Part shown: positions 2,376 to 62,690 of the stretch, piece after piece
Layout of the letters: every line of letters begins with the position of its first letter
Position numbering within the stretch: the stretch's first letter is position 1
From: Octopus bimaculoides
Lineage: Eukaryota
Direction of reading: 5' to 3'
Assembly (NCBI RefSeq): GCF_001194135.2
Contig: NC_068982.1
Coordinates: 114,954,252 to 115,018,251, forward strand
Length of the DNA: 64,000 bases
The notes under the pieces: model-generated
Database searches by the model: none
The model's input: only the letters and a program-made list of their open reading frames with translations
What the model was told of the DNA's origin: nothing
Position numbers and translations under genes: made by a program

Positions 2376-3635
2376 ATGAATAAGGTGTTTGCTAACCAGA
2401 GGAATCAGCTTACAGACCACAACTGGCTGAAAACCCGTGCCATTTTAGCTCTAAAGAATGTAGCAGGTAAGCGTCACATGTACAATTCCATTGATGCTGT
2501 ACTCAACATCGATGAAGCTGTGAATTATCCAGCTGAATTCTTGAATAGTCTAACACCACCTGGCCTCCCACCTCACAACTTGCACCCCAAGATTGGGGCA
2601 CCAGTTATGCTGCTTCGAAACCTCGATGCATCAAAGCTTTGCAATGGCACACGACTTATAGTAAAGAAGATGATATCAACACTCTTGGAGACAACAATTT
2701 TGACTGGTAAAGCAAGCGGTGAGCCTGTATTCATTCCTAGAGTTCCACTTATTCCCTCGGATATGTCTTTCCAATACAAGCGCCTGCAATTCCCGTTGAA
2801 ACTGAGCTTTGAAATGAGCATCAAGAAGGCCCAGAGCCAGTCCTTGAACGTTGTAGGTCTGAACATTGAAGAACAAGTTTTCTCCCATGGCCAACTTTAT
2901 GTGGGATGCTCAAGAGTCGGCAATCCTAATCATTTGTTTATTTATGCCGCCCCCTCAAGGAAAGACCAAAAATGTTGGTTATCAAGAAGCTCTGCAAACT
3001 TAATAAGATTTACCAAATCATCAGGTATTTATTTTTTAACTGTAATATTTGTAAGTGTTGTAAATATATTGATAATCTACATGTTACTTTATTTTAAAAT
3101 CTACATTCAAATTTATTTGTATGACTACTGTAAAACTAAACGTCAGTCTGTTTTTACATTCATTTTAAATCTATTTCAATACTAGCGCCTCTGAGGGTAA
3201 TATCCTCTGGGAACGCCCTTTTCAGAGTTATTCACTTTGAATTGTTATTATCTCATATTTGATTAGCCTGTTATTACATAAAATGCTTCCCGATTTTGGT
3301 ATACATACCTTATTGGTATTTCCTCCTGAGTTCTATATACTCTGGGAACGCATTAAAGCCCTTTTCGGGGGCTACTTTATTTGAATTCTAACTATCGGGT
3401 AACTAATTTCATGTTATTACGTAACTGACTTCACAATTTGGGTATCCATAACTTATTGGGAATTCCTAAAAACAAGATCCTGTGTAAGACAGTTCGGTAT
3501 TCTCTGTAAATGCCCCAAAACCGTTTTAAGAGCTACATACTTTGTATTGTTGTTATTGGATTAGCGAAACAGTTATGAGAACGGAACCAAGGGATAAGCT
3601 CCGCTCTTACGGAAATTACCGCGTACGTCAGCTAC
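2376..3635 (+). mobile_element. Helitron 3' fragment: decayed Pif1-type helicase C-terminus plus 3' terminus
   Basis: ORF 2376-3185 has Helitron helicase motifs (FLNSLTPPGLPPH, MLLRNLD..LCNGTRL, QFPLKLSF.MSI.KAQ.QSL, VFSHGQLYVGCSRV), with a frameshift near 2958. It ends ...tacgtcagCTAC|tatata at 3635. Bases 3181-3635 match the element at 27446-27938 in reverse orientation. Confidence 0.9.
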
Positions 3636-9879: not shown

Positions 9880-10620
9880 TTAGCACCACCTAGAAAAGTC
9901 TTTTAGTTAATTACTTCGGGACACCACGGACCACTCAAGCAGAGAGTTGTTGAGACGTGTCCTGGTGTAAGTGGTTTATACGGTATTTCCTGGAGGAATT
10001 TGTCCAAGTACCGTTTGAAAGTTGTGGGGTCTTTTTCTACTTTAGTTTCTTTCGGAATAACATTGAAAAGAGCCGGACCATTTGCAGTGAAGAAATTGTG
10101 CCGCAATGTTCTTATGTTATGTGATCTCGACCTTTGTAGGGGGCCTAGTCTTGGGTGAATTGTAAACATAATACCGATATCATCTGGATAATATTGGTGG
10201 AATATTTCCCACATGATGCAAATAATGTATCGCTCACGGCGGCGTTGCAGAGAATAGAGTTTCAGTTGTTTACGCCGAGCCCAATAATCAAGTTCCGTCA
10301 TGCCATTTATTGTTTTAGTGATTGATCTTTGTAGCACTTCGATCCTCATTATGTCTTGTTTTTTGTAGGGGGACCACAATAGGCAGCAGTATTGGAGGTG
10401 GGGGCCTAAGGAATGTGGAAAAGAGAAGGATGATGGTTTCATGGTTCCTAGTTTGAAAAGTTCTGAGGATTCATGAGCACATTCTACGAGCAACATCGAC
10501 TTTTTTGCTGATACGCACACTCCAGCTAATGTTGCTGTCGACAGTTACATCTTAGCCTCTGATAAAATCCGATGGTTCAAGTAGGTCTCCCGACGGTAGT
10601 GCATATGGCTGTTTGAGTGT
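9880..10620 (-). mobile_element. CR1/L2-like LINE 3' fragment (post-RT region)
   Basis: ORF 9903-10520 contains PHLQYCC.LWSPYKKQDI..IE.LQR, LKLYSLQRRRERY, GPALFN.IP and FKRYLDKFL..IP. Confidence 0.82.
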
Positions 10621-21262: not shown

Positions 21263-21563
21263 ATGGCAGAAGACAAAGTAATTAACAACAGTGACAGTAA
21301 CCAACATACTCCCCCACCACAACCTCCCCCACCACCACCGCTGCCTCCACCACCGCCGCCTCTGTCATCTGAAGCTGTCCGTCATTCATTCAGAATTCCT
21401 ACCGGAAACCTTTCATCATTCCACAGTGCCAATGCTAACCCGTTTTTATCGTCCATGAGCGGCATAACTTCCACGCATCCCTCTTTACAGAACGCCGCTT
21501 TCCTCAACGCAGGTCTCTCTCGTCAAATATGTCTCTCAGCAGAACTGCTACCTCGTTTTATTG
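21263..21563 (+). CDS. eyg: eyegone-like Pax gene, coding exon 1 (Pro-rich N-terminus, MAEDK...LLPRFI-G)
   Basis: ATG at 21263, open frame with a poly-Pro tract and a strong donor TTG|GTAAGT at 21564 (phase 1) that matches the phase-1 entry of the paired-domain exon. A candidate acceptor (ttctatttctcaag) ends at 21251, so an upstream exon is possible. Confidence 0.7.
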
Positions 21564-23290: not shown

Positions 23291-24368
23291 ACCACTCAAT
23301 ATCAAAGCTCTAAAATAAAGAATAAATAATTCAAGTTTATGTGTTCAATTAAATAGCTTGACTCAAAATATTAAATTTTGGCGCCAATTTACCAATCGGT
23401 GTGATTATCTTAACGATGGCACGAAAACTGTCATTTCAAAATTTTAGACAACACTTGTTAGTAGTTAGACCATTCTTTCGTTAATTATTTTATGTGACTA
23501 TGTGGTTGCGAGCAGACCTAAACACCTTCTCACATCCAACTCATTCTTGGTCAGCGGAAGATCCGGGATGTGACAGCTGAAGAGAAGGCTGCACCAGTAT
23601 TGATATGGTTTTAATCTTCGGTTGAGTAGGATTGAGCAATGTGAAATGAGGTGGCCTGGTCAAGGAGACACCGCGCTGCCCAGTCTATCCAACTATGACC
23701 TTATCGTAAATCCAACACCCTTACCAAAAGAGCGCGCACCTTTACTATATGGTGCCATATTGTCCAAATATAACTGTGCAAAATGCTATCAAGCTACTAT
23801 CTCCCACTGTGACATTATGTCATTGATAAAAATAATTTACAATGTTATCCGCAGAAAAGACTGCCCTTGAATAAATATGAACAATACTTCTGCTATATAA
23901 TACATACATGCATGCATACATACATGCATACGTACATACATACATATCAGTTGAAGTAATGCTGGCGCAATATTCCCATCAAAACATGTACCAAGTGCAA
24001 ACGTAGCTAACCTGACAGTTTTTGTGGGATACAAATAAGTTATGTACAGTTATAGAAGTTAGTCGCTCCACAGATGTGAACACCACTTCCGAAATCACCG
24101 ACGTGAATGTTTGGACAACTGCTTCGAAAACTGCAACTTCTGCACCCTTGTTAGAAAGAACTAGAATTTTCAAGTAAGGAGACTGGCTGACACGAATTTT
24201 ACTGATACAATCTGTACATAGAACAGTAAAAATATTCGTAACAATTACCATTGTTGTTATACAAACTCCTATGATGGAACTTTTGATCCTTTGCTAGAAA
24301 CTAACTCCCTCATTCTAGAAGGAATATGAATAAATATAAAAAGAAGGCACGCGTGCGTACGTGTGTAT

Positions 24369-29192: not shown

Positions 29193-30646
29193 AGTGCTGA
29201 TATCGGAATGGAGTTTGGACTGAGAAAATGTGGTGTGTTAGTCTTGAGGAGAGGCAAAATCAAATGTATGAACGGGCTAACGATACCATCGGGAGAAGTT
29301 ATGAAGCAGATAGAAGAGACGGGCTATAAGTACTTGGGGATTTTGGAAATGGATAAATTGATGGAGAAAGAAATGACAGAAAAATATAAGGTGGAGTACT
29401 TGCGCAGACTGAGACTGATCCTAAAGTCGAAATTAAATGGACGGAATGAGATCGAAGCTATCAACACCTGTACGGTTTCACTCCTTAGATAGGGAGCAGG
29501 GGTAATCGCATGGACAGTAGACGAACTAGACAGATTAGAAAAAAAGACAAGGAGGTTGCTAACTAGATATGGGTCACTCCATCCAAAAAGTGACACAGAC
29601 AGACTGTATGTACCAAGAAAAAGAGGGGAAAGAGGACTTATTGGATGCGAACACAGCGTTAGAGCAGAAGAAAACAACATAGAATGGTATGTAAAAAATG
29701 CCACAGAACCGCTATTACTAGAAGTAAGAAGGTCAGGCTTGTGTAGGATGAAATATTGCAAAGATAAAGCACTATACAAGAAATTGAAAACGAATGAAAC
29801 TGAAAATAGGTGGGTAAAGAAAAGAATGCATGGTCAATTTCAAAGAGATGTTGAAGATAAGACAGAGAAAAACGATGGCTGTGGATGACTAAAAGTGATT
29901 TAAAACCGGAAACGGAGGCTCCAATCTGTGCTGCCCAAAAGTAAGCACTAAGAACAAACTACATAAAATACAGAATAGACAGCACAGCAGAAAGTGATAA
30001 GTGCAGAATCTGTGGAAAACGGTGAAACCGTATGGCATATTACCAGCCAATTTACGCCACTAGCCCAGAAGGAATATATGAGACGCCACGACAATATAGC
30101 CAGGCTTGTCCATTGGGCACTTTGCAACAAGTATGGACTTGACAAAGCAAAAAATTGGTACGAGCACAAACCTGAAGGCATTATCGAAAATAGAAATGCA
30201 AAGATCCTATGGGATTTTATGATTCAGTGTGACCATGAGATAGAGAATAGGAAGCTGGACATAGTCTTAATTGAGAAAGAAAACAAACTATGCTGGTTCA
30301 TAGACATAGCATGCCCAGCTGACAACAAGGTATGCGATAAGGAAGAAAGAAAAGTCGAGAGATGTGACAGGTTAGCTTGGGAAGTTAAGCAGTTGTGGTC
30401 GAGGAAAAAGGTAGCAGTAATGCAAATAATTGTCGGAGCCATGGGAACAGTGAGCAAAAATCTCGAGAAGTACGCGGAACAAATAGGGGTTGCAATAAGG
30501 GTAGAGCACTTGCAGAAAACAACACTGCTTGGAACCGCTCAAATACTCCGGAAGGTACTCGAAAAATAAGAGGTGTTACCTTTGTTCACTGGTAGTGAAC
30601 AGCTGACACTGTAATACATTTCCAGCGTTAGAAGCTGTGCAAAGGC
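29193..30646 (+). mobile_element. 5'-truncated R4/Dong-clade non-LTR retrotransposon (RT C-terminus, zinc knuckle, restriction-like endonuclease)
   Basis: Broken ORFs give MEFGLRKC...YKYLG, LYVPRKRGERGL, CRICGK..ETV.HI, RHDNIA, KILWDF.IQCD...RKLDIV and FIDIACPAD. The short 3' UTR has a gttcact/agtgaac stem and is followed by (AAT)n at 30647-30729. Frameshifts and stops are present. Confidence 0.88.
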
Positions 30647-33200: not shown

Positions 33201-33362
33201 GCGGATTTTGCGATCCAGCCATATTTTCCGGTCGATATGGAACAATTGGTGGCAGCAAGCCTAAAGTGGCCACACCAAATGTCGTGGCAAAAATTGAGGA
33301 ATATAAATTAGAAAATCCTTCTATTTTCGCTTGGGAAATAAGAGAAAAGCTTATGGCTGATG
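33201..33362 (+). CDS. eyg: eyegone-like Pax gene, exon 2: paired-domain linker and first part of the RED subdomain ([40 protein letters not shown])
   Basis: Acceptor tttattttacag|GC at 33200 and donor GATG|gtaagc at 33363. The translation has the hallmark paired-domain motifs GGSKPKVAT and FAWEIR. Not shown in this frame in the ORF track. Confidence 0.93.
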
Positions 33363-34464
33363 GTAAGCTATCTTTATCTGGTAATAATTGCTTTCTTATG
33401 ATTAATGTATAAGGTGCGTGAGCTTATAAAGCGTGCTTCGGTTTTGGGAAGCACGTTCTTGAAAAATTTTTTAAAACTGTTTTCAAATTAGACATATGTA
33501 GCCTCCTCAAACCGCATTTTAAATTTTGGTGTATTTCTGTCCTTACGAAATCCTACTATATCTTATTAAAAGATAATTAATCTTTTGGCGTCTATATTTC
33601 GGTATAGTCTAAAGAAGTCTGCAGTGTAAGGATATTCCGTGTGTTCCTGCCTTATCACTGTGATTCGACCCGAGAATTACTTAAAAGGTAAACGCGCCTG
33701 CTTAATTGTCAATTGCTTTTACGAATAGGAATTCAGTTGGTCGAATGACTGAATGTCATCATCGAGACCGACGATGTATCCAACTCTTACATTCACACAC
33801 GCACGCAAGCACCCCCCCCACACACACACACACAAATATTCATGCATACTTGCATGCATGCACAGGATTCCCAAAAGCAGACCGGAGAAAGCTAATTAGA
33901 AGACTGCAGACACAAGCCATGAATGTAACTGTCGAAATATGTAAGCTTTTCCAAAAGTTTAGCATATTAGTACATATAGACATGCAACAATATGTATGTG
34001 TATAAAAACATAAAATAAAAAACTCCAATAAGGGAATCTAAAAATCTGTTCTTACTCTATTGGCAAGAAATCTAGAAATAATATTATATAACATACATAA
34101 CACATACATATATACATCCATGCATGCATGCATCCATGCATACATGTGGAATATATATGCACGTTACACACATAAACAGTAATAAAACACACATACACCT
34201 GTGTTTTATAGTGTCAGATACACTTACGACTGCAAGGTTAGCCATACGTGAATACATGCGTACAACACGCGCATATGTATGCTTACAACGCGCATATAGA
34301 TATGCATACCACAACCAAATCGGGTAACAGCTAATCCCAATAAACTGTCTTGACGTAAACAGAAGAGCTTTGCTACTTTGTTAGTGATCAGCTCCAATTC
34401 TGCAAAGGAAAAATAAAACTAAATTATATTCCAAAGAAATATACGAAAAATGTACGCGCACACG

Positions 34465-34501
<37 letters not shown>

Positions 34502-34539
34502 GCACACGGATACATACATACATAGATACATACTACCTT

Positions 34540-34700
34540 CGAAACGTGGAGTAGATGAACAGGGACAACCGATGAAAGGGAATATTCTTTATATTGCACG
34601 TCTCGTTTCTCTGTTTTTTTCGTTGTTTGAAAAACAGTTCGTTTTCTGTTTTCGTTTCTCATTGTGTTTGACTTTTTTTTTGTGATGTCCTGTACCCACA
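34540..34700 (-). repeat. Short repeat related to the segment at 41390-41540
   Basis: Shares ggagtagat...caac.gatgaa.ggg and the gtcctgtaccca terminus with 41390-41540. Both abut TA/CA microsatellites. Confidence 0.55.
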
Positions 34701-34818
34701 TATGCATGTATTTATACATATAGATGTAGGTATGTATATATATGTATGGATATATGCATATATTCATATATTATTTATACTATTATATGATCGAACGCCA
34801 CGCATCCTTCTCCAAGTA

Positions 34819-34868
<50 letters not shown>

Positions 34869-35164
34869 AATATATGTATATGTACATATATGTACGTTTA
34901 TGAATTTGTATTGCAAGTCTCTTGATGTGAAACCGTGTGTTGAAACAGAAGTTGTATTTCGAGATGGTAGGGGTTTTTTTTGCCAAATAAACACACGCAC
35001 TATATATTCATTCTTCATTCGTTTATTACTGTTATTATTTTAACTCATGTCCATTGTCCGGAAATCTTTAGTCACACATCTGTGACCTCTTCAGCGACAC
35101 TTTCCGTCCTCGAGAGTGCTCCTGCTCCACTTAGTCCATTCTGTTCTTCTATGATGTGTATCTG

Positions 35165-35360
35165 TGTTCTAAGGGCCCGCAATTGTTCAACATCCTTCCA
35201 AGCAACCTTAGAGAACTACATGGTGTTGATGTGGAAGTTTTCAAGGAACGTCTGGACAGGTTTCTATTTGAGATACCAGATGAACCGACATCGCGGCAAA
35301 GAAGAGCAGCTCCGTCCAACTCGTTACTTTACCGAAAACAATATCGGAAACAACACCACT
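35165..35360 (+). mobile_element. CR1/L2-like LINE extreme 3' end
   Basis: ORF 35156-35398 contains GPQLFNILPSNLRELHGVDVEVFKERLDRFLFEIPDEP...RAAPSNSLL. Confidence 0.75.
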
Positions 35361-35625
35361 ACCGGTGGTGCACCAGCATGACCTCAACACTGGGCTGAAA
35401 CCAGTAAAAGATAAAAGATATATATATATAGTAAATCCAAAAAACAAGAACAAACACAAGAAAATAGCAACAATGCGAGGACGTGGTACATGCAAAGTAT
35501 TAGGAGACGCTCTGGGAAGGAAAGAAAGATGGTTTTATGTTTCGAGCTGTGGTGTTATGAGCCAGGTTGTGTTGTAGGGAAGGATCGGAAGTGAGGGAGT
35601 TGGCATGTCCTGTCGGAAGTGAGGC

Positions 35626-35679
<54 letters not shown>

Positions 35680-36487
35680 AATAATAATAATAATAATAAT
35701 AATCCCTTAATACCAAATTCTAAGGGGAGTAGTAGTAGGAAGTCTTTTAACCATGAGTACTAAATACAAGTGAATAAATGCTTGTGTAACTTTAAAAACA
35801 AAATTGTCTGTCCTTTAGAAAATCAGTGTTTAACGAAAAATATAGTGTATCAATGTAAGGTAATAATAGAGGATCATAAGTATTATTACATAGGTACATC
35901 TGCTACAGTTTGGAAATTTAGATTTCATAATCATTCTCATTGATTTAAATATGGAAAAAATGTAATTCTACAATTATTAGTAAATGCATTTGGGATTCAA
36001 AAGACAGGAACATTAAGTATGATTTAAAGTGGTCCCTTATTAGTTACGCACCATCGTACAATATTGGCAAATCTACATGTGATTTTGCCTTGAAAAAATG
36101 TGTTATATAATTACTTGTAACTTAATGTTATTAAATTTCAATGGGAACTTTAAAATGCGGTGTTGTCACAAGTTTCGGAAGATATTTAAAAATTTCAATT
36201 CTTAATTATAATTTCTTATCATATATCATATTATAAGCACAATATAAAAGAAAACTTTACTATATTTAATAAATAGATAACTAATTGTTGTGAGGTAGAA
36301 TCTCTGTTTCTAATTGTCGTACCGTAGAATTCTTTTTATTCTTTTGTTGAATACAAAAAAATAGATTTTCTAGTATTTTCTGATATATTAATTTGAATAT
36401 TTTCTATATCTAAATATGTTGATGCAACAAAAATGATTGTCGGCTTTGTATGGTGGAGTCAAGAATTAAAGATGTGATTTTCTTTAA

Positions 36488-36865
36488 GCGCAGGAGTGGC
36501 TGTGTGGTAAGAAGTTTACTGACCAACCACATGGTTCCGGGTCCAGTCTCACTGCGTGGCACCTTGGGCAAGTGTCTTCTACTATAGCCTCGGGCCGACC
36601 AAAGCCTTGTGAGTGGATCTGGTAGACGGAAACTGAAAGACGTCCATCGTATGTGTGTGTGTTTGTGTATCTGTGTTTATTCCCCACCATCGCTTGACAA
36701 CCGATGTTAGTGTGTTTACGTCCCCGTAACTTAGCTGTTCGGCAAAAGAAACCAATAGAATAAGTACTAGGCTTACAAAGAATAAGTCTTGGGGTCGATT
36801 TGTTCAACTAGAGGCGGTACTCCAGCATGGCCGCAGTCAAATGACTGAAACAAGTACAAGAGTAA
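36488..36865 (+). mobile_element. Full-length tRNA-derived SINE, family A (other copies about 4615-4955 -, 11335-11565 +, 17035-17400 +, 32935-33080 + head, 46385-46790 -, 50145-50360 -, 55120-55378 -, 60235-60400 -, 60470-60530 +, 63100-63215 +)
   Basis: A-box-like (gtggctgtgtggt) and B-box-like (ggttccgggt.cagtc.cac) head, a shared body (accgatagaataagtactaggcttacaaagaataagtc.tggggtcgattt) and a tail gtcaaatgactgaaac, repeated many times in the window. Confidence 0.85.
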
Positions 36866-36932
36866 ACGAGTATATGTGTGTGTGTGTGTGTGTGTGTGTA
36901 CGTGTGTGTTTGTGTGTGTGTGTGCGTGTGTT

Positions 36933-36977
<45 letters not shown>

Positions 36978-38754
36978 ACGAACAAATTTACATATACATA
37001 TATTGTATGTATGTATGTATAGACAAGCAGATAGACATCTCTGCATAGATAATTTTTGTTTCCACGCCATAATTTCAAAATCTTGATCAACACCTTCAAC
37101 CTAACAGCTTAGAGAAATCGACTAAAGCGAGATTGGGATAGAGAAAAGGAAAGATTGAAAGTGAGGAGAGAAAAAGTGAGTGAGTGAGTGAGTGAGTGGG
37201 GCAAGAGAGAGAGAATGACATACTCAGACTGACTGAGAATACAAAAACCGAAAACTTTGATTTTGAACAATAAGTTTGTCGTTATTGCCAAAACATTCAC
37301 ACTATCACAGTAACACAGATTACCGAACTAAACTTCTAGCCTGCCTACTGTTTCATGTCGTACTCTACTTCCTTTCATACATTTAACAATAAAACGTTTT
37401 GTTACTTCCATTTTGAATGCCCTCATTATACAAAGGTGTCGCCAAAAGTTAGCTTCTACTTCCGGTTCAAATGAAGCTACAATCACGACCTAATATAAAG
37501 CTGGTCATATTCTTCACCTTACTCTATATACTTTGTGCACAAATTAACGGTATTCTTTTCGTCTAAGTTTGCACAGTGAAATATCTAGTTATTTATTTCA
37601 TTTCTGTTTATCTTTTTATTTATTTATTTTCTATTTTATTGCATTTATCTTTTATTTATTAAGTTTTTAATTGTATTTATTTTTTTGTTTATTTGAGTTT
37701 TTGTCCACCTTACCACATCAAATAATATAACGTTATCTCTTTTTTTTTTCCTTGATAACTAATGTCATATTGTGAATGAGGCCACACTATAGTTAAATAG
37801 TGATAGATTTTGCACACTTTCCTTATTGAAGTCTGGCAGATTGAAGTGTGACTATACCTCGAGAAGTGTGAAGATTTTATTGTGGCTTAGACCCAAATCT
37901 GGCCTACTTGAACAGATCTACTATGGAAGAGTTCTAAGTGCGGCCATCCTTTCTTTGTGTAGATTAGAGACTACAATTTTAAAGTGTCCATTTGTAAAAA
38001 CAGTAGAGAATGATTTGAAGGAATTTGAGCGTTCTTTCTCGTAGGTCGAAGGAACACACCGAGGCTCCCTCTTAATTTCGTATGAAGGAGAGTATCGCCA
38101 TCTCTCTAAATGTAACCACTCGTAAACTGAGTTCCTATTGGTATATTCTCCGATTATCTTCTCGTAGCATATATTTTGGAAATGAACATATGTGTGTGCA
38201 TGTATATTGTGTCTATATGTCAATAGCTACTTAAATGAGTATCTATGTGTGTGTGTGTGTGCGCGCGCGCGCATGAGAAATGAACCAGAGTATTTCAAAT
38301 GTACAGACCTTGCAAATCAGCCGTCGATCTTGTAAATTTTACTTGAAACCGCAAAGAACCATTTCAAAGAACTGTTTCAAAATGAATGTGACGTCAACCA
38401 TAATCATTTTCACATGTATGTTTGTACAACTATAATATTGTTGGACTGTACCTCTTAGCCAGGATGTGCTTTATGTGTTGAACCGTAGCTATCTAACAGC
38501 TGTACCTTGATCTATCAAACATAAGGTACTTTCGATATTACAGCTGTTAAGTAGTTTTTATATTTGTCAAAAAGATTTTAAACTAGGCTAGAATGAAAAC
38601 TAAAATGATACCGTGAAGTATATTTGCCACTTAAATGTGGCAAACCCTATACTTCACGATGTCGTGCAGCTAATGTTTATACCTCGCTCAGAGATTTATT
38701 ATAAAATGATACCATACACAACATTATCAAATATGTCTTAGACGGTGAACGGTA

Positions 38755-38876
38755 ATAATAGCACGGTAAAAATGACACAGGTAAAAATGACACAGGTAAA
38801 AATGTCACAGGTAAAAATGGCATAGGTACAATAAGCTTACTGGCACAACAAGCTTACTGAAATATACACTATTGGC
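38755..38876 (+). repeat. Short tandem array (ggtaaaaatgacaca)n plus a flank with an inverted partner at 41699-41774
   Basis: About four 15-bp units are visible. aagcttactgaaatatacactattggc matches the reverse complement of gccaatattgtatatttcagtaagctt at 26 of 27 positions. Confidence 0.65.
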
Positions 38877-40129
38877 AAAAGAAGAAGAAAGCTTTTACGT
38901 ATGTATATGTTTATATAACGCTATGTATATAGTTACCGTCTATATCTATCTATCTATATATATATATATATNNNNNNNNNNNNNNNNNNNNNNNNNNNNN
39001 NNNNNNNNNNNNNNNNNNNNNNNNNNNNNNNNNNNNNNNNNNNNNNNNNNNNNNNNNNNNNNNNNNNNNNNNNNNNNNNNNNNNNNNNNNNNNNNNNNNN
39101 NNNNNNNNNNNNNNNNNNNNNNNNNNNNNNNNNNNNNNNNNNNNNNNNNNNNNNNNNNNNNNNNNNNNNNNNNNNNNNNNNNNNNNNNNNNNNNNNNNNN
39201 NNNNNNNNNNNNNNNNNNNNNNNNNNNNNNNNNNNNNNNNNNNNNNNNNNNNNNNNNNNNNNNNNNNNNNNNNNNNNNNNNNNNNNNNNNNNNNNNNNNN
39301 NNNNNNNNNNNNNNNNNNNNNNNNNNNNNNNNNNNNNNNNNNNNNNNNNNNNNNNNNNNNNNNNNNNNNNNNNNNNNNNNNNNNNNNNNNNNNNNNNNNN
39401 NNNNNNNNNNNNNNNNNNNNNNNNNNNNNNNNNNNNNNNNNNNNNNNNNNNNNNNNNNNNNNNNNNNNNNNNNNNNNNNNNNNNNNNNNNNNNNNNNNNN
39501 NNNNNNNNNNNNNNNNNNNNNNNNNNNNNNNNNNNNNNNNNNNNNNNNNNNNNNNNNNNNNNNNNNNNNNNNNNNNNNNNNNNNNNNNNNNNNNNNNNNN
39601 NNNNNNNNNNNNNNNNNNNNNNNNNNNNNNNNNNNNNNNNNNNNNNNNNNNNNNNNNNNNNNNNNNNNNNNNNNNNNNNNNNNNNNNNNNNNNNNNNNNN
39701 NNNNNNNNNNNNNNNNNNNNNNNNNNNNNNNNNNNNNNNNNNNNNNNNNNNNNNNNNNNNNNNNNNNNNNNNNNNNNNNNNNNNNNNNNNNNNNNNNNNN
39801 NNNNNNNNNNNNNNNNNNNNNNNNNNNNNNNNNNNNNNNNNNNNNNNNNNNNNNNNNNNNNNNNNNNNNNNNNNNNNNNNNNNNNNNNNNNNNNNNNNNN
39901 NNNNNNNNNNNNNNNNNNNNNNNNNNNNNNNTAATAGAAAAATGTTACAAAAAGAAAATAGAAACCACATGGGGAAATGTAAGGGGGAAGTAAGAAAAAT
40001 AAGCAAAAATGCACATTGGAAATCAAAAAAAGTAAACGCTTTTTATGAAAAGTAGCGATAGATATATACAATTAGATGAACTGAGGTAGTAATAAAAGTA
40101 ACAAAAGTCATTCTTGTGAATTGTTAAAG

Positions 40130-41540
40130 AGATTCAAAGGCATACCGGTTTCGTAAAATTACTGATCACTGCTTTGAATGAGCACCGATTACCGAACGGT
40201 GTCGGGTCTACTAGTCCCTGAGTAATGAGATTATGTGTAAGGGAGGTAAGTAGTTCTGGATTGGGTGCAATTAGGGTAGATATAAATCTGTAATGTGAAT
40301 GGTGTATGGGATGTATAGGGGTTAGTGGTATTAATTGAAAGGTTAGTAGTGTTCTGTATTGTTATATGTTCATATTGAATTGTGGAAGATATTTATTGAT
40401 GAAAGTTGCCCCATTATTCCTTCTTTGCTGTACTGAGATGTTTTGTGATTATTGATAGAAGGGGAAAATTAGGAAATTAGGATTAAGGTTCCTAGCACAA
40501 CTTTCTATGTGTTCACTGACCTGTAAATGTCTGTATTGTGGGTGGCGGATTTGTTCTTTGTGGAGAGTGGTTCTTCGACGGAGTGATATTCCTGTTTGGC
40601 CAATATAATGATTACCACACCCTAAGCAGGTAATGGCATAGATTAGGTTTTCCGAGGCACAGGTGAAATTTGATTTAACCTTAAATATTTCATCTTGTTT
40701 AAAGTGGACTCTGAACCCTCTAAAAAGTGGGGGCATGTACCACAGTTAGGTCGACCACATTTTTTCACTTTTGGTTCTGTTGTTAATGGATATAGTCTTG
40801 CATTGGTTAATATTTTTTTCAATGATTTCGGTTGTATTTTGCTTTTGATAATTTTATGTGAGCCTATAATTTTGTTCATTGTTTTATCTCCTGTGAGGAT
40901 AGGTAGATTTTGGATGATAATGTTGAAGGCTTTGTTGTTTCTAGGGTTATGTGTGGAGATGTATGAGAGTATTTCTAAGTCTGGTGTAGTATTTCGGTTG
41001 ACTTCCCTTAATGTTCGTATATCTATTTCCTTATCTCGTTTAATGCCATCATTTATTAATGATATTGGACAATGTCTTTTGATTAGTATTGATCTGAGTT
41101 CACGGAGTCTTCGTTCACGAGTATAGGTGTCCGAAACTATGGTACAGATTCTTTTCGCTAGATTATAAGGTATATTAATTTTTATGTGTTTAGGTTGGTA
41201 TGAGTTGAATAATAGGTATTGTTTAGAATCTGTGGGTTTATAGAAGATGTCTGTTTCGATGTGGTTATTGACTATTTTAATTGGGATATCAAGAAAAGGG
41301 AGTTGTTTACTGCTGTATTCCATGGTGAATTGTATGTTGCTATTAATATTGTTAAGCATTATTTTGAAATCGAGGAGTTTTTCCATGCTAGGAGTAGATA
41401 GACAGCCGGCAACTGATGAAGGGTCGTTCTTTGTGTTACTTGTCCTGTTTTCCATTTGTTTCTCTCGTTGTTTGCGTATTGAACTCATTTGTTAGCTTGC
41501 GTATTTCATGTTGTTTACCGTTGGTGACGTCCTGTACCCA
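40130..41540 (-). mobile_element. Penelope-like retroelement fragment (RT C-terminus, GIY-YIG endonuclease, 3' repeat region)
   Basis: ORF 40643-41488 (LPFLDI...DIFYKPTD...CGRPNCGTCP) and ORF 40449-40736 (LIYAITCLGCGNHYIGQTG, a GIY-YIG motif) are joined by a frameshift. Confidence 0.9.
40132..40189 (-). ncRNA. Degenerate type I minimal hammerhead ribozyme in the Penelope 3' region
   Basis: The - strand reads attcaaag-ca GTGATCA gtaa-tt-ttac GAAA c-cg-g TA tg-c-ctttgaat. Stems I and II, GAAA and a palindromic stem III with a GUA site are present, but the core CUGAUGA reads GUGAUCA. Confidence 0.55.
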
Positions 41541-42159
41541 TATATGTATGTGTGTGTGTGTATGCATATATATATATATTTATATGACACTATGTATGTG
41601 TGTATGTATGTATGTATGTATGTATGTATGTATGTATGTATGTATGTTTGCATGTATGTATAAAGTGAAGAATGGAACTAGTAAAATACGGACTACGAGC
41701 CAATATTGTATATTTCAGTAAGCTTACTGTGACAGTTTTACCTATTTTTTTCACTTGTACCATGTTTACCTATGATTTTAAATCAGGATATGTATCAGCA
41801 TGTAAACATTTACTTCAAAGTGAAAGTCAATTTCGTAAGCTATTGTGACATTCTGCCAATTAGGCATGGTTGTCATACTAAATTATAAGTCCCCTTCCGC
41901 TGTAATATATGAATCTAGTCTGAGCCATATAACGTATCGAGTGCAAACAATTATAAAGCACCCTTCTCTGATATATTACTACATATCAATATAATAGTTC
42001 ATGATGTGGCTTTAATTAGCACTAAATGATAATCATTTATTTCACTCTATTCTTCTCAATCCTAGCATCGCACACTCCAAATTGTATCAAGATCCCGCAT
42101 AATGCACATTATATACCGAAGGTATAAAGAGGGACAATCTAGAGAAATACTTTTTTTTA

Positions 42160-42800
42160 TCTGTTGTTTACAGATAAGGTACAGAGACACCCGGCTTCGA
42201 TGCAATGTTTACTGAAGGCATAAAGAGATTTTTAACGTTGTTCTGGTGTTGACTGAACAGATAACGAACAGGTATAATTTCAGAGTGATTTTGCCTTGAT
42301 CTAACGTTTAATGGAGACAGAAAATGGGACATTGATTTCTAATGCTTACTGAAAAGATACAGAGAAACTTAGCTTTGATTTAATGTGGTTTAAAGAATTG
42401 AAGAAGATGGAGATGTGGTTTTCACCTACAATTTACTGAAGGGCTAAAGAAGAAAATTTGGTTGTGAAATGTGAACCGAAAAGCTGAAGATGAAGACTTT
42501 TCTCTGATCCACCATTACATGAAGAGCTAAAGATGAAATCTTGGCTTTAGATATGTTGTTTATTGAAAGGTTAAAGATAAAGATTTAATTTTGATCTGCT
42601 TTTTAATGATGGGCTAAAATCATGGCTAGAGACAGAGGTTTGGTTTTCACGTGTTGTTTATTGAGTGGTTAAAAAGTTAGAGGGTTGAGTTTCATAAGAA
42701 GAGAATTAACTTTGATATGTTGTTTACTGAAGGAATAAAGATGAGGACCTAGATTTAATACAAAGAGACTTTTCCTTGTTCTATTCTTTACCATGAAAAG
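42160..42800. repeat. Degenerate minisatellite, consensus about tgttgtttactgaagggctaaagatgaagacttggctttgat
   Basis: Recurring tgtttactgaa / gctaaagatgaa / tttgat motifs at roughly 40-60 bp spacing. Confidence 0.6.
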
Positions 42801-43926
42801 GCATGAAAAGGAAAAAAATAATAAAAAAATTAGAGTGGGAGTGAGTGTAATAGCTTTGATAACAAAGAATGATAGGAAACTGGGGGTGAACATCGATTTT
42901 AAGTAAACTATAAAGTTATATGCTGTCTCAGCAACATTAGCTGACACATGAGACATAAAAGAGGAGAGATAACAACATAATGGAATTCAGATAGAAACGT
43001 GTGTCGCTCCTACAACATAACTTTTACAAGAAATCAATTGATAACTCTCTTAGGAATAAACACATTTAAACAGAGCTACCTTCTTTCTTTCTATACCACA
43101 TTTTCTTTTTTTTTTCTTTTTTCTGTGGGAGGTTTTGTCTTTCTTTCCGTCTGTTTGTCTATTAAGCTCTCTCTCTCTCTCTCCCTCCCTCCCCATCTCC
43201 TCCTCTCTCTCTTAGTCTCTTTGTCCATTTTCTCTGTTTACAAATATCAATGCCCGTGTCCATTTGTGTTGCATGTTTGTGTGTTTGCGTATGTGTGGTG
43301 TGTGTCTGTGTCTGCCTGTGTGTGTGTGTGTAGTGTGTGGTATGTGTGGTGTGTGTGCGTGTTTGTGTGTATTTGTAGGTTTGCTTGTGTGTGTGCGCTT
43401 GTGTGTGCGTATGTGTGTGATGTGTGTGTGGCGTGTGTGGGTGCGNNNNNNNNNNNNNNNNNNNNNNNNNNNNNNNNNNNNNNNNNNNNNNNNNNNNNNN
43501 NNNNNNNNNNNNNNNNNNNNNNNNNNNNNNNNNNNNNNNNNNNNNNNNNNNNNNNNNNNNNNNNNNNNNNNNNNNNNNNNNNNNNNNNNNNNNNNNNNNN
43601 NNNNNNNNNNNNNNNNNNNNNNNNNNNNNNNNNNNNNNNNNNNNNNNNNNNNNNNNNNNNNNNNNNNNNNNNNNNNNNNNNNNNNNNNNNNNNNNNNNNN
43701 NNNNNNNNNNNNNNNNNNNNNNNNNNNNNNNNNNNNNNNNNNNNNNNNNNNNNNNNNNNNNNNNNNNNNNNNNNNNNNNNNNNNNNNNNNNNNNNNNNNN
43801 NNNNNNNNNNNNNNNNNNNNNNNNNNNNNNNNNNNNNNNNNNNNNNNNNNNNNNNNNNNNNNNNNNNNNNNNNNNNNNNNNNNNNNNNNNNNNNNNNNNN
43901 NNNNNNNNNNNNNNNNNNNNNNNNNN

Positions 43927-43961
<35 letters not shown>

Positions 43962-44653
43962 CTGTGTGCATGTGTAAACACCAGTGTGCACTTGTTTGCT
44001 TATAAGTTTATATGTGTTGCCTGCTGTTTAGAGCAGAGATTCGTGACGGAGGACGCATGGACCGGTGGGGGAGGGGCTGCCACATTCTAAGAAAAGCAAA
44101 ACCTGGAAAATTAGAGAAAGGAAGAGTACTTGTAGGAACATATGTGGTAACTGACTAAGCAGTTAACTGAGCAGTCTAATGTCCTGTGTCCCATCATTGT
44201 AATCCTGTTAATCTATTCTTGAAAGAATGTATGTGTACAAAGAAGCTCTTGAAAGAACTTATGTCATAGAGAGTCAGGAAACAATTTTCTCTGTCCTTAA
44301 GCAACTCAAAATGTATTAGCACAACATAAGACGTCTGATCTTTTCATAATTTCCAAACCTGAAACAATCGCTGAGACACTGGAAGATGGTGACTTATCAT
44401 GTGATACACAAAGATATGAAAGAATAATTTGATGATCTTTTAAGCCTACATATCCCGGGTTAGATTAGAAATCATTTGAAATTAAACCTATTCAATTCCA
44501 AGCAGAGATTCAATATTCAATTCCAAGCAGAGATTCAATAACATTTGATTGATCCTCGCACGTCGTCAATTCACTCTGTTTCATAAATTTTTCAAATAAA
44601 TTGCCAACGCTATGGGAGAAAACCCCAAATATATTTATTTTTATTTTTCTCAG

Positions 44654-44762
44654 GTGCAGATTTAAATAAGGTAGTTGCGTCAACAAAATCGAGGAGCAAA
44701 TTTGACATTACAACAAAAAGTGACATTGCAGCAAAAACTGACATTGCAACAGAACATGTTCG
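44654..44762 (+). CDS. eyg: eyegone-like Pax gene, predicted linker exon 3 (G-ADLNKVVASTKSRSKFDITTKSDIAAKTDIATEHV-R)
   Basis: Strong acceptor ttatttttatttttctcag|GT and donor CG|gtaaaa. The 109 nt exon is open, enters in phase 1 and exits in phase 2, exactly bridging exon 2 to the acceptor at 46942. I recognise no homology, so support is splice signals and phase only. Confidence 0.6.
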
Positions 44763-45396
44763 GTAAAATCATCTACTGACATAAACGAAATATTATACCG
44801 GCTCCCCTCCTATTTACTGAATATACTGGATGTTGTGTTTTCCTTCTGTTGTAGTTACTGTTGGAATATTTACTATTGTAACAAAGTGCTACAATAATTA
44901 TTGATATAATTGTGTAGCTATAATCGGTGTATAATAACAGTAGACATACAGAACAGTAGTGTTGTGTTCTCTCATTCTTATATGAATACATGTTTCAAGT
45001 GGCTTTTAGAGAAAATGTTTTACGTTTATGGAACGAGATTATATATGACTGTGGGTATCATATCAGAACCAGACACTAAATATACTACGCATGTCTAATA
45101 TTAGTAATTTTTACAAAAAAGACTTCTTAAAGTTTCTTTCGTGTATATGTAAAATATATTCTTTGTACTATCATAAACACTTGAAAACTTTTTCTTTCTG
45201 ACTGAGGGCTTCGTTTGAAAGGTCATTACTCTCATAATGTGGAGGCGCAATGGCCCAGTGGTTACGGCAGCGAACTCGCGGTCATAGGNNNNNNNNNNNN
45301 NNNNNNNNNNNNNNNNNNNNNNNNNNNNNNNNNNNNNNNNNNNNNNNNNNNNNNNNNNNNNNNNNNNNNNNNNNNNNNNNNNNNNNNNTATTATTA

Positions 45397-45427
<31 letters not shown>

Positions 45428-45862
45428 TATTATTAAGCAAGAATATTGCTAACAATGAGACTTTACTCTTCAAACGGACAAAAAGTTAGAAAATAATAGA
45501 CTAAATATTACAATTATAGATAAGTAAAAGTGAAGTTGCTTACTTATCGACCCATCATGCCCGTTTGATTCCACGATAGTAAAGAAAGAGAAAGAAAAAC
45601 AAAGAAAATACAATCCTTTAAAATTTGAAATAGGAAGAATTTGGAGCATGCGAACAGTAAAGGCCGTACCTATAATAATTCATGTGTTGGGAACAGTAAG
45701 CCAAGATATAGACAAATGGCTAGCGGAGATTGAAATAGAAAGTCATTTTTCTATAATTTGGCTTACTGTTCCCAGCGCACCAATTATTATAGGTACGACT
45801 ATTACTGTTTGCATGCTCCAAATAACAAATTTGGAGAGATCTAATGAATATAAATTAATTTA

Positions 45863-46148
45863 TTAATTAATTAATATTGTCTACAATTGTTTCAATTTAC
45901 ACTCAATACAGATTACAAAACATATATGTTAAAATAAGTTTGCATTTTTGAAGATTTTGAGTGAAACATCTTCAGGGCGAAGGACATTACGAAGTTTACA
46001 TGTTGATCGTTTGAAATATTCCAATTGACAATTGAAGATCTTGAGTGAAGTCAAGGTCTTCAAAATGCAAACTTATTCTATCATATATGTTTTGAAATTT
46101 GTATTGAGTGTAAATTGAAACAATTGTAGGCAATGTTAATTAATTAAT
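45863..46148. mobile_element. MITE-like inverted repeat in eyg intron 3
   Basis: Arms of about 92 bp (45863-45954 and 46057-46148) share ctacaattgtttcaatttacactcaataca...aaacatatatg...aataagtttgcattt, with a handful of mismatches. Confidence 0.75.
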
Positions 46149-46316
46149 TTATTTATTTATATCTATTAAATCTCTACATTTTCTTATTTTATAATATTTG
46201 ATATTTTATAATTTATTTATTGAAGAAATATCTCTTCAAAATATAATATATTAAACTTGTGTAACTTGGATAAAACTATCCCTGTAAAAGATTTTATATA
46301 GCCTCATAGTTACTGA

Positions 46317-46387
<71 letters not shown>

Positions 46388-46942
46388 ACTGGAAATCTTT
46401 TATCTTTTACTTGTTATAGCCATTGAACTGCGGCCCTGCTTTGAAGGGTTTAGTCGAACAAATCAACCTTCAGTACTAATTTTTTTAAACTGGTACTTAT
46501 TCTATCGGTCTGTTTTGCCGAATGTAAAAAATAACATCGGCTGGCAAGCTGTGACGCGAGACAAACATAGCACAAACTCAAAGAAAAACAAACAAAGATA
46601 TATATACATTATTTACGTGTGTGTGTGTGTGTGCGTGTATGTATGCAACGGGCTTCTTTCAGTTTCCGTCCTGCAAATACATTCACAAATACATTTGGTC
46701 AGCCCGGGGTTAGTAGAAGACACTTGCCCAAGGTGCCTCACAGAGGAAGAGAACCAAGACCAAATGTTTAAATCACACAGTCACACATGTGTTTATAATG
46801 ACTTGAAAATTAAAAATTTTAGTTCTCGGAATTTATGTCTTTTTTATTCTACATACCATTTATTTATTTTTTCATTTATTGTTAGAAAAAAATCATTAGT
46901 TATGAAATTAATTATTGTTATAAATTGTCGTATTCAAGACAG

Positions 46943-47123
46943 GGACGAGTTGTCGCCCTCACCATCAGATGATTCTATGTCAAGATTACGAAGAAACAGA
47001 ACCACTTTTTCGGCTGATCAACTTGAAATTCTAGAAAAAGAGTTTCAGAGAACCCATTATCCCAGTGTAAATACACGTGAGGAATTAGCCTTGAAGACGG
47101 ATTTGTCCGAGGCTAGAGTTCAG
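46943..47123 (+). CDS. eyg: eyegone-like Pax gene, exon 4: homeodomain residues 1-46 ([47 protein letters not shown])
   Basis: PRD-class homeodomain with a donor CAG|gtaaat at 47124, the canonical intron position between residues 46 and 47. The acceptor is AG 46941-46942, with an alternative AG at 46937-46938. Confidence 0.92.
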
Positions 47124-53256: not shown

Positions 53257-53634
53257 GTTTGGTTCTCGAATCGTCGGGCAAAATGGCGACGTCATCAACG
53301 AATTCGACTTTTTCAATATCCGACATCCCTACTGGTCCCTTGGTCACCATCAGCATCAAGTCCAATGCAGATACTTCCGTCAGACAAGACAAGCAACGAA
53401 ATGTCAACACATCACTTACCTCTTCCACCTCCTGCACATCAGCCACATTTGTCGTTAACGCATCAGTGTTCATTAAACAAAAGACCGATATACATCGATG
53501 ATTATCCGATGTCTGAAACCACTCCAAACAGAGAGAGATTGAACAGTTTCAAAGATGAATCACATTCCCGCCAACACATTACGTTCGGTAGTAAACATTC
53601 AGCATTTCGACCAATAGAGAGACATTGTTCGTAG
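53257..53634 (+). CDS. eyg: eyegone-like Pax gene, terminal exon 5: end of homeodomain helix 3 (VWFSNRRAKWRRHQR) and C-terminus ending ...HSAFRPIERHCS*
   Basis: Acceptor ttttctttgtttcatttag|GTT, phase 0. S50 marks a Pax-type homeodomain, and WFSNRRAKWRRHQR matches my recollection of Eyegone/Toe rather than Pax6 (WFSNRRAKWRREEK). Stop TAG at 53632-53634, with an AATAAA near 53702. Confidence 0.92.
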   Translation, partial: VWFSNRRAKWRRHQRIRLFQYPTSLLVPWSPSASSPMQILPSDKTSNEMSTHHLPLPPPAHQPHLSLTHQCSLNKRPIYIDDYPMSETTPNRERLNSFKDESHSRQHITFGSKHSAFRPIERHCS

Positions 53635-62395: not shown

Positions 62396-62690
62396 NGTGC
62401 AAGTGACTGAGCACTCCACAGACACGTATACCCTTAGCGTAGTTTTCGGGGAGATTCAGCGTGACAAAGAGTGTGACAAGGCTGGCCCTTTGAAATACAG
62501 GAAGAAAGAGTGAGAGAAAGTTGTGGGGAAAGAGTACAGCAGGCTTCACCACCACCCTTTGCCGGAGCCTTGTGGAGCTTTAGGTGTTTTCGCTCAATAA
62601 ACACTCACAATGCCCTGTCTGGGAATCGAAACCGCGATCCTACGACCGTGAGTCCGCAGCCCTAACCACCGGGCCATTGCACCTCCACGT
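62396..62690 (-). mobile_element. tRNA-derived SINE, family C (related copies about 47450-47690 -, 3650-3950 -, and a + strand head at 45240-45288)
   Basis: Shared cacagagtgtgacaaggctggccctttgaaatacagg body and tRNA-like head (ggaggcgcaatggcccagtggtta...). The 3650-3950 copy shares the ctgagtg.actggagcaa segment and a B-box. Confidence 0.72.

Follow-up and report, generated by a model that had tools for sequence, protein, structure and literature searches.

The locus considered here raises the question of whether a Pax gene of Octopus bimaculoides has lost the recognition helix of its RED subdomain, or whether that helix is missing only from the assembled sequence. The gene lies on the + strand of the stretch of DNA that was analysed (64 kb, hereafter the window), and four of its exons can be read. 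Exon 2 supplies the first part of RED, but no DNA read in the window encodes the last helix, though it is present in three octopod orthologues. The original prediction left two readings standing: either the protein had lost both of its paired-domain modules and become effectively homeodomain-only, with an additional exon at 44654-44762 bypassing the missing one in frame, or the missing exon lay within one of two assembly gaps, 38972-39931 or 43446-43926.

The sequences used for comparison come from Octopus sinensis (protein P0129, locus L002), Octopus vulgaris (P0130, L003) and Argonauta hians (P0001, L001). The coordinates of all features, including those of exon 3 in the three relatives, are collected in Table 1.

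Table 1. Features of the eyegone-type locus in the window, and the position of exon 3 in three octopod relatives. A slash marks a splice boundary; identities are protein identities from tblastn unless a locus is named.
Feature	Sequence	Position	Strand	Description
Exon 1	window	21263..21563	+	ATG to ...LLPRFI-G; exits in phase 1; 3' end codes for what remains of the last PAI helix; donor TTATTG/gtaagt; identity 98% to P0024, 89% to P0129, 69% to P0001
Exon 2	window	33201..33362	+	162 nt, phase 1 in and out; linker and first part of RED; 3' end ...EIREKLMAD + G; donor GTAAGC
Assembly gap, 960 N	window	38972..39931	.	within intron 2; not the site of exon 3
Assembly gap, 481 N	window	43446..43926	.	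within intron 2, in simple/tandem repeats; not the site of exon 3
Proposed bypass exon	window	44654..44762	+	open 109 nt with AG...GT borders; most likely intronic
Conserved intronic block A	window	44895..45238	+	matches L002 38215-38557, 94.8%; last collinear O. sinensis sequence before the gap
Start of SINE-like repeat	window	45239..45288	+	dispersed; left contig ends within it
Assembly gap, 100 N	window	45289..45388	.	expected site of exon 3 (about 357 nt, phase 1-1)
Right contig start	window	45389..46356	+	(TAT)n, ~930 bp lineage-specific, (CA)n
Conserved intronic block B	window	46357..46606	+	matches L002 40490-40751 (87.8%) and L003 from 26619; first collinear sequence after the gap region
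Exon 4	window	46939..47123	+	185 nt, phase 1 entry (G/AC = Asp); homeodomain helices 1-2; splice sites caag/ACAGGG and TTCAG/gtaaat; identity 100% to P0129
Exon 5	window	53257..53634	+	homeodomain helix 3 (VWFSNRRAKWRR) and C-terminal tail to the stop codon; identity 97.6% to P0129
Exon 3, O. sinensis	L002	39636-39992		357 nt, phase 1 in and out
Exon 3, Argonauta	L001	18048-18383		336 nt, phase 1 in and out
Exon 3, O. vulgaris	L003	25084-25443		intact 360-nt ORF

The earlier assignment of the gene to the eyegone type found support, and the phase 1 end given for exon 2 was confirmed. Judged from its sequence, the assignment is supported by domain architecture, by the nearest named relatives and by a shared sequence signature. 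The PAI is truncated, as the O. sinensis protein matches the Pfam PAX profile at positions 39-125 of 125 only, and the match in the window's own gene model also begins at position 39. The corresponding match in Saccoglossus Eyegone, which has a full PAI, covers positions 4-125. A pattern test found the GRPLP motif of the PAI absent from the eyegone-type protein. The homeodomain is complete (Pfam Homeodomain positions 1-57 of 57, E = 3e-24), its third helix carries Ser at position 50, as Pax homeodomains do, and its best matches in PDB are the paired-class proteins Alx4 and Pax6. A simple and therefore weak pattern test for an octapeptide, [HY]S[IV]x[GNR][IL]L, found none in P0129, in P0001 or in P0128, a probable squid or cuttlefish transcript. 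Once the cephalopod matches are passed, the relatives bearing curated names are Eyegone (Mizuhopecten, Saccoglossus and Cimex) and Eyg (Pycnogonum). A tail of the type RILRN[KR]AAERAA is found in 90 of the 120 best matches (81 of 90 without the PAI motif), and it occurs also in cnidarian PaxC. The automatic 'Pax-6' names attached to the locus are misleading; the gene is probably not a Pax6 orthologue.

The claim that no coding sequence for RED helix 3 exists in the DNA read in the window proved correct. A scan of its six frames by regular expression gave no SSINR-type peptide, tblastn with human PAX6, the Argonauta orthologue or the O. sinensis orthologue found no match to the helix, and blastn with the nucleotides of O. 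sinensis exon 3 found none anywhere in the window, so no misplaced copy was seen. When the flanks of that exon were included in the query, only dispersed repeats belonging to the upstream flank were matched. Searches of the protein database with the exon-3 peptide, in its Argonauta and O. sinensis ORF versions, returned only three sequences of probable squid or cuttlefish origin, besides more distant relatives, and no fragment from the window's own species. The search with the Argonauta version missed even the protein from which the query was taken, and its silence is therefore weak evidence.

The exon is readily found in the relatives. The helix, GVCTQATLPSVSSINRILRNKAAERAA, is part of both Octopus orthologues, XP_029653925.1 of O. 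sinensis (P0129, 464 aa) and CAI9717023.1 of O. vulgaris (P0130), which match the four readable exons of the window with 89-100% protein identity. Each of these two proteins is a non-representative member of a cluster whose head is a partial model, and is visible only when the cluster's members are listed. The helix is present as well in Argonauta and in the three probable squid or cuttlefish sequences (the transcript P0128 and the genomic ORFs P0121 and P0122). In each of the three octopod loci it is encoded by a single exon of 336-360 nt, phase 1-1, lying between exons 2 and 4, which codes for the last RED helix and a linker of about 90 residues leading to the homeodomain. P0129 matched five exons and no others by tblastn in L002 and L003.

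The position that exon 3 should occupy in the window can be read from the gap-free loci of O. sinensis and O. vulgaris, to which the window was aligned as collinear chains. The chains to both loci place it between positions 45238 and 46357, that is, between the end of block A and the start of block B. The O. sinensis exon lies 1.08 kb downstream of block A. Block A has no match in O. vulgaris, where exon 3 falls between the counterpart of window positions 44437-44794 and block B. The 100 Ns at 45289-45388 are the sole unread letters of the interval, and no trace of exon 3 was found in the sequenced remainder (45239-45288 and 45389-46356). From A to B the window has 1118 positions, most of them without a match in O. 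sinensis, where the interval is 1932 long.

Both contig ends at this gap fall in repeats. The left contig ends in a SINE-like repeat of which a second copy lies on the minus strand at 62639-62688 (86%) and a partial copy at L002 18755-18785; ARAGORN found no tRNA gene in its head. The right contig opens with (TAT)n, and the ~930 bp that follow have no counterpart at that place in O. sinensis or O. vulgaris, according to the alignments to L002 and L003. These ~930 bp include two hairpin repeats, seen as inverted repeats at 45639-45823 and 45832-46178, and are followed by (CA)n. The idea that miRNA genes lie near the gap was rejected, since the Rfam hairpin matches scored far below the gathering scores. 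The surroundings of the O. sinensis exon are similarly repetitive: most of the 1.08 kb upstream is made up of repeats that occur many times in the window, and the 0.5 kb on the downstream side is microsatellite, with long (TA)n/(CA)n. An older annotation of the locus was split at this point into two partial models, P0024 and P0002, which is what an exon missing from an unbridged gap would yield.

The interpretation that I consider highly probable is that the exon for RED helix 3 has dropped out into the assembly gap at 45289-45388, and not out of the genome, leaving an ordinary five-exon gene incompletely assembled. In the sister species exon 3 is a small patch of unique sequence, with SINE copies immediately upstream of it and a long (TA)n/(CA)n microsatellite immediately downstream. 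An assembly unable to resolve such flanking repeats would break on either side of the exon, and in the window the break would be the 100-N gap. Against this account stand the two peptide searches, which brought up no sequence of the window's own species containing exon 3, and the size of the gap as written, since an exon of 357 nt would not fit into a true 100 bp. Given the disparity of 1118 and 1932 positions, with most of the former unmatched, the gap would need to be far longer than 100 bp, or else a small contig was left unplaced. The same size, together with the lack of any trace of exon 3 in the window, the rearrangement of the A-to-B region relative to O. sinensis (including the ~930 lineage-specific bp) and an in-frame join of exon 2 to exon 4, can be cited for a real loss, by which a deletion or rearrangement removed the exon and left a homeodomain-only factor of 341 aa with neither PAI nor RED recognition helix. 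I regard such a loss as very unlikely, because exon 3 goes missing precisely where a contig breaks off in repeats, and because the two Octopus relatives (dS about 0.13), Argonauta and the three sequences probably from squid or cuttlefish all have it intact. The readable coding sequence gives dN/dS of 0.07 in the comparison with O. sinensis and 0.09 in that with O. vulgaris (dS 0.13-0.14), ratios that point to strong purifying selection on the readable exons and to strong constraint on the gene as a whole. The peptide of exon 2 would be useless without helix 3, yet it is identical in the window, O. sinensis and O. vulgaris; three synonymous and no non-synonymous differences suggest that the RED-encoding part is still constrained, an estimate based on those three substitutions only. 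The notion that both paired-domain modules are gone is not supported: both Octopus orthologues keep exon 3, and exon 2 is unchanged in protein. Skipping of the exon is a separate matter. Exon 2 joined to exon 4 gives an open frame of 341 aa, and skipping would keep the frame because exon 3 is of phase 1-1 and its length a multiple of three. The earlier statement that a helix-skipped product would remain in frame is therefore true, but by virtue of the symmetry of the real exon 3 and not through 44654-44762. In arthropods, four gene models of eyg type leave out this exon at an identical boundary, a hint that forms without the helix may recur among eyg genes. That the octopus exon is either really lost or routinely skipped, so as to give an in-frame 341-aa Pax protein reduced to its homeodomain, is nonetheless very improbable.

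The original prediction was right that the exon might be hidden in a gap, but synteny puts it in a third gap, downstream of the proposed bypass exon and outside the range considered there, rather than in either of the two that were named. Each of those two, situated between exons 2 and 4, could accommodate an exon of 357 nt, but it is exceedingly improbable that either holds it. Along the whole intron the conserved blocks follow one another as they do in O. sinensis and O. vulgaris, and exon 3 of these species comes after the counterparts of 44206-44871 and 44895-45238, well past both gaps. The flanks of the larger gap, 38702-38969 and 40363-41390, correspond to L002 19035-19279 and 19754-20781, which are separated by 474 bp of intron; the O. 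vulgaris counterparts of 38414-38556 and 40745-41390 abut at L003 17419/17417, with nothing matching the gap. The flanks of the smaller gap align to L003 up to 20678 and from 21814, and the nearest flank matches in O. sinensis are 33791-34774 (to window 42525-43444) and 35968-36268 (to 43927-44220). The sister-species DNA opposite this gap is rich in repeats, with a large tandem-repeat array upstream at L002 27177-33840. Tblastn with P0129 found no Pax-like coding opposite either gap in L002 or L003, where the counterparts of both are intronic repeats. As for the stretch 44654-44762, which had been taken for a strong exon, it most likely belongs to the intron and is open only by chance, with AG and GT at its borders. 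A real alternative exon there, or from 44660, would serve as an in-frame bypass (376 or 374 aa) or else as a terminal or frame-breaking exon, truncating the protein after exon 2 as in P0024, and I judge this very improbable. The stretch is open in the window's species and in both relatives, which share the GT donor and a further AG lying 6 nt downstream of the first, and P0024 used it from 44660 as its terminal exon. However, the O. sinensis and O. vulgaris models leave it out (its counterparts, L002 ~37318-37426 and L003 ~24023-24131, 94-95% identical, lie inside intron 2 of both), the acceptor tctcAG on which the bypass relies is tctcCG in both species, and the peptide has no homology to any protein in the database beyond P0024. 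The end of that model is a read-through of the donor into a stop, and may represent no more than a predictor closing a model for want of the next exon. The stretch is more conserved (~95%) than the surrounding alignment block 44206-44871 (~87%), but this was rejected as a sign of coding: the neighbouring intronic block A is equally conserved, the differences within the stretch mostly change amino acids (three of three against O. sinensis, three of five against O. vulgaris), and the acceptor is absent from the relatives. Were it spliced in after exon 2 and followed by an exon 3 of the O. sinensis type, the frame would shift, since neither of its possible lengths (103 or 109 nt) is divisible by three. 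The arithmetic of the bypass does hold, in that the route 21263-21563/33201-33362/44654-44762/46943-47123/53257-53634 adds up to 1131 nt and an open frame of 376 aa. But the frame depends on an exon-4 acceptor at 46941-46942 that is seen in no orthologue, 4 nt downstream of the acceptor at 46937-46938 that is used in Argonauta, O. sinensis and O. vulgaris, and with the conserved acceptor the same route meets a stop at codon 202.

I infer, then, that exon 3 is present in the species' own genome at 45289-45388, and the apparent loss of the helix is almost certainly an artefact of assembly rather than a real feature. The corrected gene model has five exons, with exon 3 at this gap, and it merges the two older partial models into one gene; both the split models and the automatic names at this locus call for caution. 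The full protein would be expected to have ~460 aa and the usual eyegone layout, in which the PAI is truncated while RED is intact and a homeodomain is present; by analogy with Drosophila Eyg, both the RED subdomain and the homeodomain are expected to serve in DNA binding. If the helix were truly lost, the result would be a Pax protein without a working paired domain, a matter of relevance to the evolution of Pax genes and to the development of the cephalopod eye and head.

The gene may be compared with several known ones. The closest are the orthologues from O. sinensis, named 'paired box protein Pax-6' (464 aa), and from O. vulgaris, named 'box Pax-6' (372 aa), which have the same order of exons, the same phases and collinear introns. 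Identity to the O. sinensis protein is lowest in exon 1, while exons 2, 4 and 5 reach 97.6-100%. The two differ from the DNA read in the window in carrying exon 3 with RED helix 3, though in the O. vulgaris model splicing from a donor within exon 3 retains the helix and omits the linker. Argonauta hians has a 'paired box protein Pax-6-like' (453 aa) with the same five exons and a single exon 3 of phase 1-1, but its gene is compact (13 kb vs 32 kb) and its identity outside the domains is 67-69%. Further afield, Drosophila Eyegone and Twin of eyegone and Tribolium Eyg resemble the octopus protein in the features by which the eyg class is defined: a PAI truncated at its N-terminus, a paired-class homeodomain and no octapeptide (PMC3082225). 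In the proteins of cephalopods and other molluscs the PAI and linker are reduced still further than in those of Drosophila and Tribolium. Vertebrate PAX6 and its 5a isoform are homologous in the RED subdomain and the homeodomain (P0129 aligns to residues 39-131 of 6PAX), and DNA binding by Eyg has been proposed to resemble that of Pax6(5a) (PMC3082225). Unlike PAX6, the octopus protein is without the N-terminal half of the PAI, and it carries the signature RILRNKAAERAA that is common to most of its nearest relatives.

The window carries a Pax gene on its + strand, four exons of which can be read, and the second of these ends exactly at the donor where the original prediction had placed its end. 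The read DNA does lack the recognition helix of RED, one of the two subdomains (PAI and RED) of the paired domain, as had been claimed: a regular-expression scan found nothing like PSVSSINRILRN in any frame of the window, permissive tblastn with human PAX6 and with the Argonauta and O. sinensis orthologues found no RED helix 3 there, and blastn (word size 7) with the exon-3 nucleotides of O. sinensis gave no exon match. With the Argonauta query, tblastn recovered even the poorly conserved C-terminal tail at 67% identity, and therefore exon 3, which encodes RED helix 3 and the linker to the homeodomain, would not have been missed if present. I conclude that the missing helix is very probably an artefact of the assembly and that the gene is otherwise ordinary, of a kind already annotated.

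Features of the window and of orthologous loci. L001, L002 and L003 are the genomic loci of the orthologues from Argonauta hians, O. sinensis and O. vulgaris; other positions are those of the window.
Feature	Position	Strand	Description
Exon 1	21263-21563	+	ATG to ...LLPRFI-G; phase 1 out
Exon 2	33201-33362	+	starts GFCDP...; phase 1 in and out; donor GTAAGC
Exon 4	46939-47123	+	DRDELSPS... and homeodomain helices 1-2; phase 1 in
Exon 5	53257-53634	+	VWFSNRRAKWRR..., C-terminal tail, stop
Exon 3, O. sinensis	L002 39636-39992		357 nt
Exon 3, Argonauta	L001 18048-18383		336 nt
Exon 3, O. vulgaris	L003 25084-25443		360-nt reading frame, intact in genome
Gap between framing coding exons	38972-39931		960 N
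Gap between framing coding exons	43446-43926		481 N
Gap between framing coding exons	45289-45388		100 N
Collinear segment	44206-44871		L002 36872-37537
Collinear segment, block A	44895-45238		L002 38215-38557
Collinear segment, block B	46357-46606		L002 40490-40751
Collinear segment	46598-47256		L002 41041-41686
Hairpin inverted repeat	45639-45823		83-nt arms, 86% complementarity; lineage-specific sequence right of gap
Hairpin inverted repeat	45832-46178		117-nt arms, 89% complementarity; lineage-specific sequence right of gap
ORF, upstream of gene	2376-3185	+	269 aa
Long ORF	40643-41488	-	
Long ORF	29994-30569	+	
Long ORF	9903-10520	-	

The top database match is a protein of Argonauta hians (P0001, 453 aa), in which 112 residues, starting GVCTQATLPSVSSINRILRNKAAERAA, separate ...RERLMAD from DRDELSPS. 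Two partial models, P0024 (exons 1-2 plus the segment 44654-44762, discussed below) and P0002 (exons 4-5), are identical or nearly so to the window's exons and represent an older annotation of this same locus, in which the gene was split in two. The members listed for their clusters included O. sinensis XP_029653925.1 (P0129, 464 aa) and O. vulgaris CAI9717023.1 (P0130, 372 aa), both 89-100% identical to the four exons of the window and both possessing the helix, which is found as well in a transcript (P0128) and two genomic ORFs (P0121 and P0122) presumably from squid or cuttlefish. In these clusters a shorter partial model serves as the representative and the full-length Octopus orthologues are subordinate members, so that an ordinary homology search shows only truncated proteins at this locus, which could mislead other analyses.

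In the three gap-free orthologous loci, exon borders were set so that the spliced coding sequence gave the exact protein. In O. sinensis, Argonauta and O. vulgaris alike, exon 3 is one undivided exon, entered and left in phase 1, and owing to this symmetry exon 2 of the window would stay in frame if joined to exon 4 (341 aa). The annotated O. vulgaris protein makes use of an internal GT donor past ...KAAERAA (G/GTGAAT; exon L003 25084-25164), keeping the helix and losing about 90 residues of linker, either through an alternative 5' splice site or through an error in the model.

The original prediction had the helix bypassed in phase through an exon at 44654-44762, in a 376-aa frame whose arithmetic is correct. 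In the annotated genes of both sister species, O. sinensis and O. vulgaris, this segment falls within intron 2, and there the AG proposed as its acceptor reads CG. Block A, which is plainly intronic, is as well conserved as this segment (95% identity), and the differences in the segment are amino-acid-changing in three of three cases versus O. sinensis and three of five versus O. vulgaris. In a database homology search its peptide had no homologue beyond the old model P0024, which runs on past the donor and stops at TAA. Its length of 109 or 103 nt would break the frame if it were placed after exon 2 and before an exon 3 of the O. sinensis type. The in-frame route also requires an exon-4 acceptor at 46941-46942; all orthologues use 46937-46938, and with that acceptor the route reaches a stop at codon 202. 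In both relatives the frame is open and the GT donor is conserved, as is another AG lying 6 nt past the first. The segment might be a minor alternative exon, or one that truncates the protein, though this is unproven. The alignment, the altered acceptor, the amino-acid changes, the lack of a homologue and the misfit of frame together argue for regarding 44654-44762 as intron sequence.

There are 17 runs of N in the window, and of the three that lie between the framing coding exons, the original prediction named two as places where the exon might lie and omitted the third, 45289-45388, to which the comparison with relatives points. The introns of the window can be aligned with those of the two Octopus loci (82-96% identity). 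Exon 3 of O. sinensis lies between the conserved intronic blocks A and B; that of O. vulgaris, where alignment to L003 gave no match to block A, lies between the match to window 44437-44794 (L003 23810-24163) and block B (from L003 26619). The counterpart interval in the window is 45239-46356, whose sole unread stretch is the 100 N. As for the two gaps that had been named, the counterpart of 38972-39931 is 474 bp of intron in O. sinensis, and in O. vulgaris the flanking blocks abut, while the counterpart of 43446-43926 is repeat-rich intron devoid of Pax-like coding, which in O. sinensis comes directly after a large tandem-repeat array. About 150 bp of the window's intron 2 (42525-42673) matches dozens of overlapping sites of this array (L002 27177-33840, about 6.6 kb), which explains a good part of why intron 2 differs in length (25.4 kb vs about 12-13 kb).

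The surroundings of the 100-N gap are repetitive on both sides. Directly before it, the left contig stops 50 bp into a SINE-like repeat (another copy at 62639-62688, a partial copy in L002), and directly after it the right contig opens in (TAT)n, followed by about 930 bp without counterpart in the relatives. Inside the latter are two hairpin repeats, probably MITE-like insertions; identity as miRNAs was rejected, their Rfam miRNA-family scores being far under the gathering scores. Exon 3 of O. sinensis is preceded by 1.08 kb made up mostly of dispersed repeats, which recur many times in the window, and is followed by 0.5 kb of (TA)n/(CA)n. With such repeats on either side, a unique stretch of about 360 bp would be expected to be lost from a short-read assembly or to stay unplaced. 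The gap as written is shorter than the exon: the figure of 100 N is a placeholder or too low, unless a small contig dropped out of the assembly. Exon 3 is very probably present in the genome of this species.

Other features of the window seem to derive from mobile elements. In the ORF at 2376-3185, Pfam recognizes the Pif1 helicase 2B domain (E = 1.7e-18); this ORF is probably a piece of a transposable element of Helitron or Pif1-like type. No Pfam domain matches the three long ORFs in introns or flanks (191-281 aa), which resemble remnants of transposable elements; the region 40.6-41.4 kb is 88-92% conserved in O. sinensis and O. vulgaris.

The constraint on the gene bears on whether the helix might truly have been lost. 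Over the four readable exons, dN/dS is 0.07 vs O. sinensis and 0.09 vs O. vulgaris (dS 0.13-0.14), values that point to a gene that is not decaying, and the counts for exon 2, though small (three synonymous differences, no non-synonymous), agree. The part of RED encoded by exon 2 would be pointless without the last helix.

Models that skip the helix do occur elsewhere. Four arthropod eyg-type gene models (P0077, P0095, P0115, P0118), namely Musca domestica "Pax-7 isoform X7", Tachypleus tridentatus "Pax-6-like isoform X4", one from Microctonus hyperodae and a partial Limulus model, leave out RED helix 3 at this very exon boundary, passing from ...FAWEIRERLISE directly to the linker ahead of the homeodomain. 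These could be real in-frame isoforms or annotation artefacts.

Proteins of the eyg class have a paired domain in which PAI is truncated and RED conserved, together with a paired-class homeodomain, and they lack an octapeptide (PMC3082225). The domain layout predicted for the window gene is of this class: the Pfam PAX match covers profile positions 39-125 only, the homeodomain is complete, and a motif scan found no octapeptide-like motif. The closest curated names in the homology search are Eyegone or Eyg, and P0129 aligned to residues 39-131 of the Pax6 paired-domain structure. In the passages of Navet et al. 2017 (PMC5333810) that were consulted, eyegone homologues are named in Lottia, Crassostrea and Pinctada, none is named in cephalopods, and all putative eyg sequences were omitted from the phylogenetic analysis. 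By analogy with Eyg of Drosophila, the complete protein would be expected to contact DNA with its RED subdomain and its homeodomain.
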